This document shows, piece after piece, positions 44,673 through 55,409 of a DNA stretch of 64,000 nucleotides (the stretch's first letter is position 1; every line of letters starts with the position of its first letter). The translations under genes and the position numbers were made by a program. The notes beneath the pieces were generated by a model. The model ran no database searches. It worked only from the letters and a program-made list of their open reading frames with translations, and was not told the origin of the DNA. Source of the stretch: Tubulanus polymorphus (Eukaryota > Animalia > Nemertea); assembly GCF_964204645.1 (NCBI RefSeq), contig NC_134036.1, positions 1,922,001 to 1,986,000 of the forward strand. The letters run 5' to 3'.

Positions 44673-47600
44673 TTGTCTAAGAATGGGACGTGAACATCCC
44701 TACCCCGATTGATGTCTTTGTAACCGCCCTCGCATTAATATGTACTAGACCGTCGTTTCGTCTGTTGTGAGTATCGTTTTTGAGATACCCCACCGGAACC
44801 AGTCTCATGGGGGATAATGCCACCGGAAGTTTGTACACGGTCGAACCGGAAGTCGACGACGGGAAACCATCAGTAACGGATTTGTTTGTTAAAGACTTGT
44901 TTCGGCTGCCTGGCAACAATTGATGAACGGAATGATCGTTCTTTATCAAATAACAATCTCTGAAGATTTTGAACGCCAGTAGTACTGTGGTTATCGAGAA
45001 TCCGACAGGTGTCACTAGTGTACAGTAGGCCATAACTTATTGTGAGATTTCTCCTATTTAAATGACAACTCGGCAACGCTACTGTAAGGATCCGACAGGT
45101 GTCGCCGCTTGTGTGCAGTAAGGGTATAAACTACTGTTTCACGTGAGGATCCACCAGGTGTCGCTAGTGTGCAGTAAAGGTATAAACTACTGTGACCCGC
45201 CAGACAACAGCGGAAATGTTCAGTAATATTCGTATTCGTAGAAAACTTGTCGTCTGTCTGTGCTCCAATGTACTGATTGCACCTTGGACCAATTTACGAA
45301 TAATTTTCTACAATTTGTCTGACGAGGAGAGTGAGACAGAGAGACGTGTCAACGGAATAAAAGGTTCGTCTGTCTCTGGCTCCCAGGTCCCGCCTAAACG
45401 TGGTTGAATCTGATTGGTGCGTTTTCCTGTCGGCACGCCGGAGCCCGAGGGGCGCGTCTCACTTCACTGCGCCATCGCTCTCATCAGAGATCGCAAAAGA
45501 ATTCCATCTATTCGTTACCACGGCAACGACGTTCCGGGGCACTGGATAACAACGACGTAAATAACGCAATAAACGGCTTATATTCGATTGTCTATTCGTC
45601 TTCGGTATTTCTTCTTTTTTTGGATCTACCGCCATCCGTAAATACTTACTTCAGGGTTTATACCGAGTGAACCCCCTGCGACCGACATCAGTTATCAGAC
45701 ATTTCTAATTGAACATGAACCACAGTCATCAGACATTAGACATTTCATCAGCGCACTTTCAAACCCTGAGTGTTTAACCTGTCCGAGTGCAGGGGAGCAG
45801 CTTCCAGGCTGTAGGGGGGGGGGGAGCAGGTTCCAGGCTTCAGACAAGGACCGACATTTTAACCGGCCATAAATATTCATCGGCTCCTATTCGTCGTTTC
45901 GTGTTCAGGAATTCAGTTCACGTTCCTTTGAACAATTTGCGCGCGCGCACACAAACCATTATTAGACATCTCATCGTCCCGTTTCTATGGTAACGGAATT
46001 TAGAGGATTAGTCGGCGCGAACGAACGTCATACACAAATCCACCCGTCGCCCCATCCCGTCTCTCCCCCTCACTCCCTCTACCCTCACCCCCTCCCTATA
46101 ATCTACACTCCCTCGCCCCTCCTGATCCTCCACATTCCCACTCCCCGTCACTGTCCCTCGGGCACGAATCAAACGAATGAAATCTTGCGATTTCTCCAAT
46201 TCTTTCTAATAACGCTCTTTATTTATGTTAACTCTGTAAGGTGGTATAATATATAATTTATTAATTTATTTATTATAATGATATATACACCATATATGAA
46301 AATAAACAGAAGATTTAGTACCCAGCCCTAATTAAGATTGATAAGTTACTTTTTCCTGTGTCTTTTCTGTTTTATATCTGTAGGAACGTGCTCAAAAACA
46401 AGCCATGCAGCACTTCGTCTGTCGTTTATATATTTCTGATATCTTTCTTATCTGAAAAAAAACTTATTCGAAATGAAAAAAAGAACCAAAAGTCAATCAT
46501 TCTTTTATCATTTTCATATTTTTTAAAATGTTTTTATTTCATCTGTATAATTTCTCAATTGTTCATTTTATTTTTGTATTATTTTTACTATTCTTATATT
46601 CATTATTTTCGTATCATTTATATTATTTTTTAAATCATTTATATAATTCTTATTTTATCTAGATCATTTCTATATTATTCATATTATTTCTACATTGTTT
46701 ATATTATTTTTTGTATACGCGCATTCAATCCCTTGACGCGAGACATTTGGGGCTTTCAGGAGAATTATTTCATAGAAAAAATTATAATTTTCAGGCCGGT
46801 TGAATTTTTCTGCCTCTGCCTTTTGGCAGTAATAATGATACGTTACAGGGCGTTGATAAGGTACAGGGCGTTGATAATAATATTGACAAATACAGAATTG
46901 GGACTCAAAATATGGACCAGTTCTATGTAGGCCTGATAAGGATTTTGAGGGACGTTGAAAAGAGTCCTTTTTGCGCCATTAAAGACAATTTTTGTTTTTA
47001 TATACATTCAGATTTCTTTAAGATGGTGATATTTTCTACCGAGAAGGCACCGGACCGTGTGATACAATGGCGATAACCCAAAAAAGAGATCGGGATGGTC
47101 GAAATGTATCCACGACCACCAAATGGGGAACATACAGAGGACATCTTTCCTCAGACCGCGGATTCGAAGCTACATGTATTCTCACGATTAGGTAGAACTT
47201 ATTTGTTTTTAGTTTTCTAGTGCCAGTATTCTGAAAACCAGGTAGGACCCTTTCTGTTTTTTTAGCCAGTTTCTCGTTTATGTACAAATTCCTATCGAAA
47301 AATATCTCGTAGTCTATGAAATGAAATTGATGAATTTTTAAGATTTTTATTACATTCATCACCTCCAAGAGATATTTGCAGAGCAAGCATTTACAAAATG
47401 ACAAATTTCAGCAATACTTCTATAAATACGTTGTACTGTATCGCCATCTATCGGGTGAATAATGAAACGTTCCCAGTGACAGCTCAACGCACTGGTCGTC
47501 TTTGATACCAATATCGATGCAATCGCCATCTATCGGTTTCTCGGTGTAATACAACCAAGACTTCATGTTCAACATTCGCTGCGCTAGTCCCATGCATTAT

Positions 47601-48591
47601 TTATAACCTGCTCATCCACCAGATGGCGAACGAGTGCTTGCACCCGAAAAGCACGTACCGTCATTTCCATCACTGCCGCTAGTAGTCGCTGGGAATTACT
47701 ATCTGTAAATGCCGCCAGACGTCGTTGCGCGCGATGTTAAAAAAAGTTGATCACAGTTTTATGCGCTGACGTGATACCGATCGATAATCACTAACGGTTT
47801 TTCTCTCGTTTGAACAAGTTGATCGATCAACAATCGGAACCGTTTTTTCATCGATGACATCACGGGAGCTTAGTAACGTAAGTTTTTTGTTTTCTTTCAT
47901 TTGTTTACTCTTCCACTTTATCATTCTCGAACTTCTGGTACCGGTCAGTATCACCTATAGCATGTCCCACGTCGGGGCGAAATGATTCGTGGTAAGATTT
48001 TAAATTTCGATTTACGTAAGAATTATTGCCATGGTTTTCATCCATATTGTCGTGACAGAACCAGTTAGGTTGAGGGGTTTATCGGCTGGTATCCGACGAC
48101 TACGGAACCAGTTCTAAGCCGTAGGTTAAAGTTTGACTCAAAGTTAAAACATAACTTGATTTAAAATAAGTTGATTTTTCTGATGAGTCACATCTTCACG
48201 GTCATACCTAGCAGAGGGACCCAGACATTTTGGGAAAGTGCCCTTTTTGTATATATTTTGTACATATTAATTGTTATGTCTTATAGAACTGCCCTTTTTC
48301 GGGTTTCCTGCCCTTTTTTGGTACGGCCCTTATCTTAACTCAATGAACTGGGTCCTGGTATATATTCGACATGTTTGTTTTAAAGTTTTGAATTTTCAGT
48401 AATAGGCCTATTCTGCTTAAAAGGCCATCGAAAGTGTAAGAGTTTCATCATAGAATTTCAAAAAGAAAAAAAAAACGAACAGATTTTCACAGAAGAAAGT
48501 TTATTATCGATTTTTCAAAAAATGAAATAAATTAATATTGTGCATAGATTATGCATATCCGATATTTACAAACAAAAGCAAACATTTAGAT

Positions 48592-49110
48592 TCGAAACCA
48601 TGACGTTTTTGCCATTGACAAAAATGCAAACCCCTTATTCTGTTTACTCTCCAAAATATCTAAGATATCGAAACCATGACGTGGTTTGCCCAAATTCTGT
48701 TTACTCTCCAAAATATCTAAGATATCGAAACCATGACGTGGTTTGCCCAAATTCAGTTTATTCTCCAAAATATTTTCCATGTCGAAACCATGACGTGCAT
48801 TAAGCCCAAAACGCAAATTCAAAGGGCTCAATATTTAGCCTTAAATTTTCCAAAATATGTTTGTATTTTGGATTTCGAAACCATGACGTTTGTTTGCCAT
48901 TTACCCAAATCCAAGGTGTTTTAATTCTGTTTTTTCCTCCAAAATATTTAAGATCTCGAAACCATGACGTGTTAACTAAAAATCGAAAGCCTCATTTTTC
49001 AGGCCGGGATCTTTAGATTTCGAAACCATGACGTTTTTTGCGACAAACTAAAATCCAAGGCCTCGTTTTTCTCCAAAATATCTAAGACGTCGAAACCATG
49101 ACGTGGTTTG
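48592..49110 (+). repeat. Irregular array of 8 copies of TCGAAACCATGACGT, homologous to the adjacent Dmrt DM-box exon
   Basis: Invariant 15-mer at 48592, 48668, 48725, 48782, 48875, 48956, 49020 and 49090. The best units match exon 50146-50181 at 30-31 of 36 nt. Confidence 0.88.
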
Positions 49111-49714
49111 CCATCAACTAAAGGCCTCATTTTCCAGACCTATGTCTTTAGAAGTCGAATCATTCTTTTCGCCATTGTCGCTATTTTGGCCTTTATTTTC
49201 CTAAATATCCAATGGTATCGGAACCCATGCGTCGCTATGCCAATCCTAGCCACTACTATGGCGTTCTCCTCCAAAATATTTCCACTGTCGAGACCACTGT
49301 TACATTATTTTGCCACTATAGACTAATGAAGCCAAACACGATTTCGTCCGGTGGTGTAACGCGCTCTAAAGAATCTGTTTTAGTAACAACATTTCGCGTG
49401 CACATCAAAACATGACGTTGAACTTTTTCCAAACGGCACTCCCTCAAACAGCAAGCTACATCTCCTAAATCATTCTTTAAACATGTGTCGCTACTGGCAT
49501 CTGAATCGGGTTCGACCTGAAAATATAAATTGTAAATCGTGAGCGTGTTGGTAAGAGTCTAAAAATAGATGGACTCAACAAGAGACGTAGAAATGGAAAT
49601 GCTGCAATAATACTAAGCTCGAACTGTTCAAATGGATTTAGAGGTTTACTGTCAAACAGTAAATTCATGATCACACATTTTTTCCTAAACTAATATAAAA
49701 TGTACCTTTTACAT

Positions 49715-49940
49715 TCAGTGTGCGATACCTTCACATTCCGTGTGCGACACCTAACGAGACGTGTGCCACACCCCGCTGGAAGTGTGCGCTACCCACTCAA
49801 ACAACCGATCTTTATATACATTGTAACCAACTGTTTAAAACATATCGTTTGCCTAACTGTTAACCAATCAGATTCTCCCCGATAGTGTCACGTGCTATGA
49901 TAAAAATCAGCCATTGGTTGATTGATTACTCAGTCGAGGG
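49715..49940 (+). promoter_or_regulatory. Putative Dmrt promoter
   Basis: Four GTGTGCGACACC-like motifs (49717-49792), DMRT-type site TATACATTGTAAC (49815-49827), CCAAT at ~49864 and ATTGG at ~49913, E-box GTCACGTG at ~49887, Inr-like TCAGTC at ~49930. Confidence 0.55.
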
Positions 49941-50079
49941 ACTCTAACGTTCCAAAACTATGAACGTCATTTGATCTTACGGCATCGTTACGCTTGTTAC
50001 GTTACGTTACGTTTTTTACAGGTGATTGTCGAGTCTTCAATCAGACAACACCACCGTTGCCATAACTACGGCGGTAACA

Positions 50080-53000
50080 ATGCCGAAAGATGTTACGTCA
50101 GTGATAACCAACGCTGCAGGTGGCGCTGCCAGTAAGCGTCTGCGTTCTCCAAAATGTTCTAGATGTCGAAACCATGGCGTGATAGCCGAACTGAAAGGAC
50201 ATAAGCGCTACTGTAGGTGGCGCGACTGTCGCTGCGTGAAATGTTTATTGATCAACGAGCGACAACGAGTAATGGCGGCCCAGGTGGCGCTGCGACGGCA
50301 ACAGGTAATTATAGATTCGATATTTGTCTGTCAGTGTTAACACTAGTAATGTAACAACATAGGATTCTTAGATGGGGAAAACCCAACTGATAGCGCCCCC
50401 TAGTTGTGTTTCGTTGCATTTCAATGAATTGTAATGAACACCAGGGGACAGGACTAGCTAACTCGTATAAATAATTTAATGTCACTTAAACGCCACCTAG
50501 TGGGTTTTATCATTTAACGTTCTGTGGCATAACATCGGTTTAGAATGATGCTTAGATTTTTTTTGCTGGATATATTTCCAGGAACAGGAAGTAGCGATGG
50601 GATTGTGTGTGCCCATACCCATATCGACTTTAGACGGTGGGACTGCTTCTTCGGAAAATACCACCTTCTCACCCTCGAAACTGAAAAGACTGGCCCTCTT
50701 ACACGGCAACTGTATCACCCAAGGTGAGTTCCCGAGGGGTAGCAGGTTGCTTTGATATTCGCAGTAGGATCAGAGCCAAATTTTTGGCCTCTTTAATATA
50801 TATCTTAAAAACTAAGATGGCCGCTATAGCAGCTATATGAATTCTTACACAAATTTGAGAAAATACAAAGATGGCTGCTATGCGACTTAATCGATGGAAA
50901 TCTTCCGAAATTTATAAAAACGTCGTGAACGCAACGCGGAACATAAGTGGCCCAGTTCCACAGTTCTGATTTAAATTTGATTCTAGAGTTAAAACATTGA
51001 AGATGAACAGACTTTAACTCTGAGTGAACTCTAACTCACAACTGTGGAACCGGGCCATGGAGTTTAGTGATAGTAAAAAATTGAAGATGGTTGTTCATTG
51101 AATAGCCGATGGTTTAGATTAACTATTTTAATCTCAACTGCTTGGTTGTGTATCGTCAATGGACCTTTGAGACGGTCAAATTCGTCATGATGATAAGGCG
51201 GCATCCCGTATCTGGTATCGGTTAGCCTATAGGCCAAAATAACAATGTAACTATATACGATAATAGTATTTACATCGTGAATGGTATTTCAGCTATGGCA
51301 TTAAATCAGCGAGTTTAGGAGGAACTTGTCTGGCAACAAAATTACTTACATGTCTCGATTGTTTGTTTTCTGCGCACGTCGCCTTAAAGAAAAATAACAA
51401 AGGGATCCGCGTTGTAATTGTTATTGCATCGAGAAGATTTATGAAGGTTTCTTGACAGCGGTCTTTCTTTCATACAGGCCCAGGAGAAATTAAACACGAA
51501 TTCTCTTGTAATTTCGGGAAATAAAAAAGAACATTTTGGAAACGGGTGATAAAATGCTTTAAAAACTGAATAACAAAAATAGTAAAACAGGTTAAAGCCA
51601 AGGTGACTAACTCTTGACTTTTGACCAAGTCAAAAAATTAGGAAAAGTCCCCTGAATCACCAAATGATGCAACACAGAAATTGTTTTGCCTTCCATTCAA
51701 CGGCTAGGGGCTGCGGTAACGATAGTAACAATGAAATTTGAATTGACTGTCAACTATCCACTGGTTAAGTCCAACCAACTTTTGAGATTTGACCCAGCTG
51801 GTTAACTCTTTTGAACAACTGCAGCCCCTGATATTAACAATGAACTTTCAATTGTCATTATGTCAACTATCCACTGGTTAAGTCTAACCAACTTTTGAGC
51901 AACTGCAGTCCCTGATAGTGACAATGAACTTTTAATTTTCACTATGTCAACTATCCACTGGTTAACCTTTAACCAAATATTTCGAATCAAAGTTTACTTA
52001 GCTCTAACGGCCAACAGATAATTCAGTTTGCTTCGACTACATTTTGATCCCACGCTTCAAAATCTGCAACAGATAATTCAGTTTGCGTCGCCTTCATCTC
52101 TTGACTCATGTCGTTTATTTTATTACATAATAAAACATTCTATGTACGGATATACTCTTTAAATGGCAACAGACTTTCAAAGTTCAATCCAACTTCGTAA
52201 AAAAGAAATCCTCGCATGGCTTACGGAAATAAACAAGGTCCGCCGTAGCGACCCCGGAACCGGAGAATGGTTATACTATAGCCTTCAAAACTAACAAATT
52301 TCACTTCGACTTCGACTCTCGCCTGTTCGCTACAAAAGTGGTAATAATTGCGAATGATGAATGCGCAAGGTTGACCGCTCTAAATTCTATAAACATAAGC
52401 CCAAAATGTACATACGTTTCCAACGTACCAACCAAATTCTGATGATCCATTTCTATGTAGCCAAGGTGCTAAATATGAAACCACCATCACCAACCCTATC
52501 AGGAGAGCCTTCTTCTATAACCCAACACATCTTTGAATCGTACATCAGTCTGATTGTGTGGATATTATGTACATTTAGCTTCACATTCATATGTAGCCCA
52601 TGGCCGTGACCGGTGTCCAACAAGCCCATGATATCCACGAGGCTATCCATTGTTAACGCCGCTAATGCTGGTAAATAAAGAAAACCAATATTAAGACTCA
52701 TTATATCGCAGTGCTAATGACCCATCTCAAGGCGAACTAAATTCTGATGATCCATTTCTGTAAACAAGATGCTTAATATGAAATCATCATCACCAACCCA
52801 AGCAGGTGAGCCTTCTAACCCAACCCATCTTGGCCTCTTGAGCACCAAATATCAAAGCACATCCTACACAGCATAGAACTTTAAAACTAACATCGTTCCA
52901 ATTTCATCATCAACCAAGACCCCTGTTCTGCATCAAGCTTAAGTACAAGAACGAAGGCTTGCTTCGAAAAAGTAAGACTCACAAGAAAGATCGTGGCTAT

Positions 53001-55409
53001 AATAGTCTCCAAATCTGATTGAATTACTCACATCCTGTTGAACTATAGACCGTTCTTTTTTTTCAAATCGGGAGATTTTCGCTCAAAAACGTTGTCCCGT
53101 ACAATAAATCAGCAGCGCTTGACAGAAAAAGCAACATGTTTCAAATGCGTTCAGAAAATTAGGTTGTGGCGCTTATCTCGCGGTTGAATGCTATATCTTA
53201 TTAGTGTTTGCTCTTTTCAAAGTCCTCGAATCTTTTGATCTATTGAGTTACACAGTATCTGTTTGAAAATGGTTCTCATAAAAAGTGGGGTATTTAGGCT
53301 GAGAAAAAATGATACCTTGTTTCTCCTAGGCCGTGTTCGCTCATTTTGTAAACTGCAAAGAAGGATATAATCAGTTCATTCCCATAGATGTCGGGTCTGT
53401 TATTTTTAGCTTGATCGTGTTTTTAAAACAAAGTCATGTACCGCGTACAGCAGAGTAGATAGGCGGTCTACCGGGTCAACTTTCAAACTCTGCAGAAATG
53501 AAAAGAAACAGGACATCCAATTTTTCTAGCCTTATCTATTTTCAACATGACGGCTCAGACGTGTGCGGTAGTTTATGGTGTCTACACATTAAGAGATGTG
53601 TCGCTATTCATTTTATCGTTTCGTTACAAAATAACGCTTTGGAATGTAAACGGGGCCTTTTTAACAATGTACCCGGCGTTATCGGGAAGATTTTAGAATA
53701 GAAAATGGAGAATGATTTTATTGTGAAACTTGGTACAAAGTAACGTTTTTGAAATAAACTCGAACAATCTTTCTTTTCACAAAGTCGTCAATAGAATCGG
53801 AAAGGCGGTTTTAACACAACTTGGGGCAAGAGAAAAAAATAATCTGAAATGTTTATTTTTTTTTGCTTGTAGTTAATTCCTATTCGACGTTTCGACTTAA
53901 TCCTGATAGTTTGCTTCGGAAAATATTATTTAAAAATCGAAAATGGGGATTTCTATCTGTGCATACCCGTGGGATTGGGTATTTTGACCTAAAGGGATTC
54001 TGACAGCCGACCGACGACCTTGGATTTTGTCAAGTCACAACAGACGCGGCTGTTAAGAGAATGCAGACGAGACCGAATTTATATATATATATGTTCACTC
54101 CGTCAGACGACGTGTCATTAGACACCTCTAATTAGACGATGTTTTGATACAAGGTTGCCAAGGTTATCGGTCCGTTAACGTGTGATATCAGTTACATTCA
54201 CGCTGACTGTCAATGAAGCGAAGAGATCGCGTTTATCATTTTGATCTTGAAATAAGAAGAAAGAAGATTTCTTCCTCTTTGGTTTGATTTCTAATAGTTG
54301 TTTCCTACAAGTCATCACCAGGAATGTCGATCAAAAATCATTAACCGTGATTATGACACATTGGGCCAATCGAAGAATAAGAAGGGTTTGAAATGCTTCC
54401 TTTTACTTAGAGTTTCCCAGCAGCGGGCGTCTTGAAATAGGGAAAGAATTGTTCCTTTGAGCGGTTTGATCATTGATATTTATTTGTTGTTTTTCCTAAA
54501 CAAACCCACCGATCACACCTACCGGTCAAACCAACACGGAATGAAACAGATTTCTATTTTCCTTTATTGATTGGTTTGATTTATAATCATTTGTTGCGTC
54601 CCTAACCCCTTACATCATCAGCAATGATTAGTTACATTTAAATGATTAATATGCATTTTAATGATTAGCATGCATTTTAATCACAGCTTCATTGAAGTTA
54701 ACGAGAATCACGTGATATAAATGGCCGGTTCTACAGAAATCTCTTTGATCTCCATAAAACGGTTACGGCAAACAAACTCTTCCAGAAGATATTGCACCTT
54801 CCATAATTCCACTGATAACATCATTAATTACCAATTTTGCTTCGTTTTTTTTCCAGAAGAGACCACGCGTACAACGAGTCGTTTAAAAATGCTGTCGAAA
54901 TTCTTCCCTGAACTGCCGACGTCTTTCCTCGTGCACGTGTTAAATAGTTGCCACGATGACGTCAGTTTGGCCATTCAGAAACTCAGAGAAGGTACGTATC
55001 ACATTAACAGCCGGAAGATGGCAGCACTTAATGTTGTTAAGGGTTCGTTGTGTTTATTTTTTTTTCAGTTTCACCCTCAGCTCCGTCGAGCAGCGCCTCC
55101 GACTCGTCCGGTCTCTACCAACCATTTCTTCCGTGGCCCCCGCCCTCGATCGGTCCGCGTCCGTCTCTCGGCGATCCCGGTCCGGTCACGCAGCCGCATC
55201 AGCTTTCCACTGTCTCCTGGCCACCGGCGTCGCATCACCAACTGGTGACTGCCGGTAACGCGTACCCGCCACCGCCACCTATATACACGTGTTACGAGTC
55301 ACGTGCTAATATAGGTGGCGCCACGGTTATCGAGCCGGCCACCGACCTATCGCGTATGAAGTACCCGTATGAAGAGGTGAAATCGCACGACAAAGAAAAA
55401 GACCATTAA
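50080..55409 (+). CDS. Dmrt: Doublesex/mab-3-related transcription factor (DM + DMA domains), 280 aa; exons 50080-50304, 50582-50723, 54857-54991, 55069-55409
   Basis: Exon 1 encodes a full DM domain [54 protein letters not shown] with all 8 Zn ligands. Exon 2 reads [14 protein letters not shown]... with a GTGAGT donor. Exon 3 is DMA-like ([34 protein letters not shown]). Exon 4 is Pro/Ser-rich. All GT-AG phases (0,1,1) are compatible; AATAAA at 55793. Subfamily not assigned. Confidence 0.92.
50949..51056. mobile_element. MITE-like element in Dmrt intron 2
   Basis: TIRs GGCCCAGTTCCACAGTT / AACTGTGGAACCGGGCC (16/17 complementary). Confidence 0.75.

Follow-up and report, generated by a model that had tools for sequence, protein, structure and literature searches.

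In the window analysed here (the whole stretch of 64,000 nucleotides of Tubulanus polymorphus DNA), short repeated units resembling the DM-box of a Dmrt gene lie about 1 kb upstream of that gene's first exon. This raises the question of where these units come from and what, if anything, they do; the original prediction took them for a self-derived regulatory element, which would act as a source of antisense or small RNA, as a decoy or as a homotypic enhancer. The homology of the array to the exon, its uniqueness to this locus, the constraint on its 15-mer core and its transcription are demonstrated below. The array is very probably transcribed in the antisense direction, within a spliced divergent non-coding RNA, and the possible roles of this RNA are weighed after that.

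Layout, origin and constraint of the array

The array (48592 to 49104) is an irregular tandem of eight plus-strand units, oriented as the exon, which share an identical 15-mer core; the RNA made over it appears to come from the minus strand. A sequence scan located the eight exact copies of the 15-mer TCGAAACCATGACGT at starts 48592, 48668, 48725, 48782, 48875, 48956, 49020 and 49090, and the exon carries a copy that is one base off at 50166. According to shuffled controls, 0.22 matches to the 15-mer at ≤2 mismatches are expected by chance. From core to core the spacing is, in order, 76, 57, 57, 93, 81, 64 and 70 bp, and three 57-bp units repeat at 93% match. The claim that the 15-mer is invariant in eight copies, with spacers that vary in length and sequence, was thus borne out.

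Two types of units can be told apart by their likeness to exon bases 50146-50181. The five A-type units (cores at 48668, 48725, 48782, 48956 and 49090) are identical to the exon at 30-31/36 positions; sequence alignment places them, all on the plus strand, at 48648-48683 (30/36), 48705-48740, 48762-48797 (31/36), 48936-48971 and 49070-49105. The three B-type units (cores at 48592, 48875 and 49020, the first unit covering 48587-48607 on the plus strand) have about 21 bases in common with the exon, i.e. 18-21/36. The identity of 30-31/36 that the original prediction had given for array units is that of the A-type. Independent repeat-finding put the exon and the array units in the same repeat families. 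Their homology is limited to 50145-50187 of the exon (plus strand), the segment that by alignment lies behind the array and is the predicted pairing target of antisense units, and the longest perfect match between array and exon is 11-14 nt.

Beyond the eight intact units the array runs on in a decayed form, as three or four copies (at about 49147, 49222, 49290 and 49411) that extend to about 49420. The repeat search assigned the first three to 49126-49330 on the plus strand, with 3-5 changes in the core, and the motif count revealed an isolated ninth CATGACGT(T) at 49411-49419 on the same strand, which is probably the last decayed unit. The window contains 10 plus-strand occurrences of CATGACGT, 9 of them in 48599-49411. 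The three 57-bp units, of 19 codons each, preserve the frame of the DM-box and produce an 87-aa plus-strand open frame (48540-48803). A coding array was rejected, as neither this frame nor an 80-aa frame on the minus strand had a Pfam match or homologs; there was no evidence of plus-strand RNA for the 87-aa frame.

The origin of the array was addressed by searching the 268-Mb genome (77 contigs), where it matched only itself. The exact 15-mer was found at two other places, both within one 2.9-kb local duplication of contig 4; these copies lack the remainder of the array unit and their number is about what chance allows. A chance similarity or a widespread repeat was rejected, since the array matches only itself and the stray 15-mers occur only at that one spot; on the point of genome-wide uniqueness, raised in the original prediction, the answer is thus that the array is unique. 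As a separate observation, the two contig 4 copies (3255745 and 3258669) are followed by CA, which makes a full CRE (TGACGTCA), and they lie in a promoter-like context.

The genome holds five DM-domain loci. The array units agree with the local exon at 30-31/36 positions, with that of the contig-1 paralog at 27-29/36 and with the others at 23 or fewer, and a 3' CGTG is common to the units and the local exon. No paralog's exon fits the units as well as the local one, and the array occurs at this locus alone; as had been proposed, it derives from the gene's own DM-box, and it is a one-off. The comparison thus supports an array made of a copied piece (about 40 bp) of the DM-box exon of its own gene, amplified about 1 kb upstream. 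An origin from a paralog was rejected because the best candidate, that of contig 1, reaches 27-29/36 and is without the 3' CGTG of the units, and a larger duplication of exon or promoter was rejected because homology is absent outside 50145-50187. Nor is the array a general trait of Dmrt loci: no comparable array was found at the four paralog DM loci, searched within ±4-6 kb. Relatives were also sought by a metagenome pattern scan, by look-ups of the exact product and by an exon-sized ortholog search; all were blank, and such blanks are little informative.

All 15 columns of the core are invariant in 8/8 units, and the immediately flanking columns are already variable. When the three B+A dimers were aligned, 30/30 core columns were identical in all pairs and the remaining columns were 54-59% identical; at the rate of the non-core columns 20.6 core changes would be expected and 0 were found (P about 1e-9). 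Given such invariant cores against flanks of 54-59% identity, neutral decay with homogenisation of whole units is inadequate, even when alignment error and the post-hoc choice of the block are allowed for. The 15-mer is thus under constraint, and its invariance argues for function. The A units hold a second conserved block, CTCCAAAATAT, and the 8 bases that separate the two blocks vary.

Recurrent G>A differences between units and exon had also been reported, with the suggestion that they would leave G:U pairs in an antisense transcript. G>A does account for 3/6 differences in the commonest unit, but the excess of wobble-compatible changes among the differences is not significant (P 0.04-0.10). 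The further claim that a G>A change creates TGACGT proved correct, this half-CRE being found in all eight cores.

The array is dynamic as well: one allele, present in DNA run X5 and RNA run X2 (see below), has gained a 133-bp dimer; the duplication lies at 48937-49069 and includes an 8-nt filler. A 32-bp deletion allele affects the decayed part (49229-49260). An allele of core 1, the outermost, was found in X5 which lacks TGACGT and can still form 14 Watson-Crick pairs and one G:U pair with the exon.

Transcripts of the Dmrt gene and of the array

Read evidence was obtained by comparing 47400-53300 (5,901 letters) with runs X5, X2, X8 and X7, all from one study. The GT..AG joint of Dmrt intron 1 (50305-50581, plus strand) was carried by X2 and X8, at depths of 413 and 10.6, respectively. 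Depth in X2 was 4.6 within this intron, and zero in several intergenic and intronic bins as well as at 47400-47793. X2 is thus RNA, because the joint stands at depth 413 against 4.6 for the intron, and its signal over the array is not a carry-over of DNA, because depth is zero at 47400-47793 and in several intron bins.

On the plus strand, Dmrt exon 1 (50028-50304, X2 contig depth 413) encodes the DM domain (Pfam DM, 85 bits) from an ATG at 50080, and exon 2 (50582-50751), defined by RNA contig and translation, continues its open frame. Further downstream, an open frame with a weak DMA/CUE-like motif (54721-55248, plus strand) is probably a later Dmrt exon; the DMA motif scores 16.2 bits, under the 23-bit cut-off, and the CUE-like look-alikes of the frame (0.87) offer no more than a lead. 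Searching the exons one by one against exon-sized proteins yielded no close ortholog. The host gene is probably a divergent DM paralog of the DMRTA kind, going by these sequence features. The link to sex development drawn in the original prediction finds no support here: this divergent paralog, whose C-terminal DMA/CUE-like motif is weak, is not of dsx/DMRT1 type. A Dmrt intron contains very high-copy repeats at 50946-51142 and 51734-52127, where DNA depth is in the hundreds versus a background of about 8 and RNA, too, reaches a very high depth; among them is an 84-bp tandem (51808-51965) with inverted joints.

X2 depth was 45-67 from the array up to 49983, versus 413 at Dmrt exon 1. This upstream signal comes as two contigs, one over 48768-48979 and one of 759 nt over 49004-49983 (its end before the skip described next is 49514 in the contig table). 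The 759-nt contig skips the 189 nt from 49517 to 49705, at a depth of 47.5 in X2; DNA run X5 (about 6-9x) has 0 reads with this skip. Within the 4-nt overlap there are five choices of cut, the sole canonical one being CT..AC on the plus strand, which makes GT..AG when read from the minus strand; the minus-strand donor reads AAAAG/GTACAT, and the acceptor has a pyrimidine tract followed by CAG/G. The contigs are unstranded and strand was read from this single splice junction in one informative run (X2), X8 being too shallow to reveal the upstream RNA. A homozygous 189-bp deletion with such ends is a possible alternative to an intron, but an unlikely one, at a few percent.

The upstream contig stops at 49983 and that of the Dmrt mRNA begins at 50028, 45 bp apart as measured between contig ends. 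As the depth of bin 49961-50157 is wholly explained by the two flanking contigs, no RNA cover spans the 44-bp gap between the head-to-head transcripts (49984-50027, from X2 depth). The gap contains a polymorphic (GTTAC)n microsatellite at 49996-50013, of which DNA run X5 has a +GTTAC allele. We strongly infer that the upstream RNA is a minus-strand one with start sites head-to-head with those of Dmrt, and a spliced minus-strand RNA with the whole array in its second exon is highly likely. The original prediction had made its G:U argument conditional on antisense transcription, and RNA contigs with a minus-strand GT..AG intron now support it. The same strand speaks against the decoy reading of that prediction in its sense form.

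As modelled on the minus strand, the divergent RNA comprises an exon 1 at 49706-49983 (to the end of the X2 contig), the 189-nt intron at 49517-49705 and an exon 2 at 48480-49516 that includes the entire array (X2 contigs, depth 45-67) and whose 3' end is unmapped; coverage goes down to about 48582, and there is an AATAAA on the minus strand at 48505-48500. In this model no ORF is longer than 64 aa, and the longest one has neither a Pfam match nor homologs; the RNA is apparently non-coding. With contig ends that face each other less than about 1 kb apart on opposite strands, and without a long ORF, it has the attributes of a promoter-divergent lncRNA. Exon 1 has a small repeat module of its own, with four GTGTGCGA-type copies of a 22-bp tandem unit (GTGTGCGA(Y)ACC-type motifs, 49703-49800).

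Other readings of the X2 signal were tried. A long 5' leader of Dmrt on the plus strand was rejected: the intron ends would be non-canonical on that strand, depth rises from 47 to 413, and 49984-50027 is uncovered. An extra exon at 48188-48384 was rejected because the signal there belongs to a dispersed repeat. This repeat, of about 100 bp (48220-48315), adjoins the array upstream, its genomic copies (at least 40) being 72-95% identical; near it, at 48181, lies a CTGATGAGTC motif, for which Rfam gave no match. An RNA family or a structured RNA over the array was likewise rejected, there being no Rfam match and fold z-scores near zero (-0.96 for the minus strand and -0.51 for the plus strand, with only weak inverted matches, 74%).

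Possible pairing with the Dmrt mRNA and competing explanations

What might such an RNA do? A piece of about 40 bp of the DM-box in the first exon would have been copied to a place about 1 kb upstream and multiplied there to give the irregular tandem array, which would now form most of exon 2 of a spliced RNA that begins about 45 bp away from the Dmrt start and runs in the opposite direction. The divergent RNA would thereby carry 8-12 antisense copies of the DM-box and could base-pair over the DM-box with the Dmrt mRNA, and less well with the mRNA of the contig-1 paralog; this pairing would dampen or gate the translation or the stability of the Dmrt mRNA, and the strictly invariant 15-mer may in addition be read by a protein. 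Antisense pairing with the Dmrt mRNA is the action that we tentatively put forward as the most likely for the array RNA; that pairing takes place in vivo, and that it has any effect on Dmrt, we only infer.

An antisense A unit forms 30 Watson-Crick plus 3-4 G:U pairs out of 36 with the exon. The predicted duplex has -52 to -56 kcal/mol with the gene's own exon-1 mRNA, -48 kcal/mol with the contig-1 paralog and -24 to -34 kcal/mol with the other three paralogs; the shuffled controls are at -22 ± 3 kcal/mol, and a perfect 46-mer at -88 kcal/mol. In X2, the upstream RNA stands at 0.115-0.16 of the depth of the mRNA, which, multiplied by eight sites, comes to about one antisense site per mRNA, contig depth being a poor measure. 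The core 1 allele that has lost TGACGT and still pairs tips the balance slightly towards pairing and away from a CRE site. A pairing role is made less likely by the fact that transcripts diverging from promoters are frequent and in many cases without a function of their own. Moreover, the eight cores contain no wobble-compatible change, though simple pairing would tolerate them (rough P 0.04), so that recognition looks stricter than pairing alone would make it.

A core strictly invariant up to sharp edges, with variable columns next to it, is also what would be seen if the array were a homotypic cluster of one 15-bp site for a DNA-binding protein, containing the half-CRE TGACGT that arose by G>A, the RNA being a by-product; we think this possibility, the foremost rival of pairing, unlikely. 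The base that creates TGACGT is in all copies, which puts eight TGACGT within 513 bp, and more ATGACGT(T) motifs stand near the start sites (about 49412-49413 on the plus strand and 49964 on the minus strand). The array is 0.9-1.4 kb upstream of the bidirectional start region, and such a cluster might serve as a promoter-proximal enhancer for the Dmrt gene, for the divergent RNA or for both, a role that we hold to be doubtful in equal measure. However, 15 invariant bases in eight copies are stricter than usual transcription-factor sites, the full palindromic CRE (TGACGTCA) is found in 0/8 units, the second conserved block (CTCCAAAATAT) also falls within the exon-homologous part, and one natural allele of core 1 does without TGACGT. 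The 11-mer AACCATGACGT is not enriched in the genome either (102 occurrences, including the 8 of the array, versus 83 in the reversed control): these counts lend no support to a generic transcription-factor site and are compatible with a specific one. Another 11-mer, TCGAAACCATG, is about four times commoner genome-wide than its reversed control (147 versus 35).

Three further explanations seem to us less probable. Were the array a neutral minisatellite, in which a fragment of the exon was duplicated by chance, grew by slippage and unequal exchange and is carried passively in the divergent RNA, its variable copy number (the 133-bp dimer duplication allele of X5 and X2), its decayed units near the gene, the 32-bp deletion allele and the failure to find a relative elsewhere would all be readily understood. 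It is rendered improbable by the 30 core columns, which have 0 changes instead of the expected 20 or so, and by the flanks, which conversion would homogenise too and which are just 54-59% identical. Alternatively, the array RNA could be processed into piRNA or siRNA and silence Dmrt by means of these small RNAs. Comparators for this are Su(Ste)/Stellate, the Fem piRNA of Bombyx and the partial ARR17 duplicates of poplar. A gene-derived sequence in several copies, transcribed antisense, would suit this role, stretches of 15-21 nt can pair with the exon once G:U is allowed, and the partial first-exon duplicates of poplar give siRNAs (PMC7947767). Yet no signal of an inverted repeat or a hairpin was obtained (fold z-scores as given above), a perfect 20-nt match to the exon is absent, and the RNA appears as a long spliced species, so we grant a small-RNA precursor little chance. 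Equally slight, in our view, is the prospect that the array is a protein-binding repeat module of a non-coding RNA in the style of Xist repeat A, its exon origin being incidental and no mRNA being paired. It would account for eight identical short cores with spacers of variable length and sequence in an exon of a spliced non-coding RNA, and for an invariance beyond what pairing needs; but no conserved local RNA structure was found, and the case is one of resemblance only, with no known protein or motif.

To return to antisense pairing, a stronger form of it would give the Dmrt gene a stoichiometric antisense brake of its own, built from a piece of its DNA-binding-domain exon inside the divergent transcript of its promoter. 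As a whole this scheme is rather doubtful. If it is true, each firing of the promoter also makes an RNA that can pair at 8-12 sites with the mRNA, and with that of one paralog, and a threshold or a delay is set on protein output. If the RNA does pair with the Dmrt mRNA, the locus offers a compact natural case of a self-targeting regulator that evolved from its own coding sequence, is tied to the same promoter and is multiplied in tandem; it would join divergent promoter transcription, repeat modules of lncRNAs and antisense RNAs from gene fragments, which are usually treated apart. If the array is a cluster of DNA-level sites instead, an exon fragment has seeded a regulatory element through a single base change. 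The locus may also serve as a test bed, because mutating one 15-mer separates a DNA-site model from an RNA-pairing model.

Comparison with known systems

A keyword search of the literature, limited in extent, did not turn up such an array, be it at a Dmrt locus or within a divergent lncRNA. The array RNA shares several features with the divergent lncRNAs of developmental transcription-factor genes, being spliced and starting tens of bases from the coding start on the opposite strand. Ordinary divergent RNAs have no complementarity to the coding exon of their neighbour, whereas the array RNA has multiple antisense copies of it. Xist repeat A consists of about eight short conserved cores with variable spacers in an exon of a non-coding RNA. 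The array has the same layout of cores and spacers in such an exon but no sequence relation to repeat A, and its core comes from a coding exon.

Within the DM-domain genes themselves, DAPALR of Daphnia Dsx1 overlaps the 5' UTR in sense, acts as a decoy for the repressor Shep and tunes the output of Dsx1 post-transcriptionally (PMC8351930). Like DAPALR, the array RNA is a promoter-associated non-coding RNA of a DM-domain gene that shares sequence with the gene's own mRNA; the shared part, however, is a repeated antisense copy of coding sequence and not an overlap. In the sex-determining regions of Salicaceae, partial duplicates of the first exon of ARR17/RR yield RNA by which the intact gene may be silenced; they act through siRNA and DNA methylation and are hundreds of bases long, sex-linked and often inverted (PMC7947767). 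Several partial copies of the first exon of a regulator, giving RNA, are found in both cases, but the array is made of short direct repeats beside the gene. On our reading, DAPALR, the poplar ARR17 duplicates and Xist repeat A are analogues, and not families in which the array RNA would be included.

The closest known kind is the natural antisense RNA that arose by duplication of a gene fragment. The array has the exon-homologous segment (30-31/36) that this implies, and the antisense transcription, the latter as read from one junction in an unstranded library. The Lymnaea antiNOS RNAs are pseudogene-derived trans natural antisense RNAs, for which a duplex with the parent mRNA and negative regulation have been proposed (PMC3537157, PMC2984423). 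They resemble the array RNA in coming from a duplicated piece of a gene, with a region antisense to the parent mRNA, and in belonging to a spiralian animal. The array differs from them in that the copied piece spans just 40 bp or so, occurs 8-12 times in tandem and is not inverted, and in that a duplex with the mRNA is only predicted. It is antisense solely by virtue of the divergent host transcript, 1 kb from its parent, with which it shares a promoter region.
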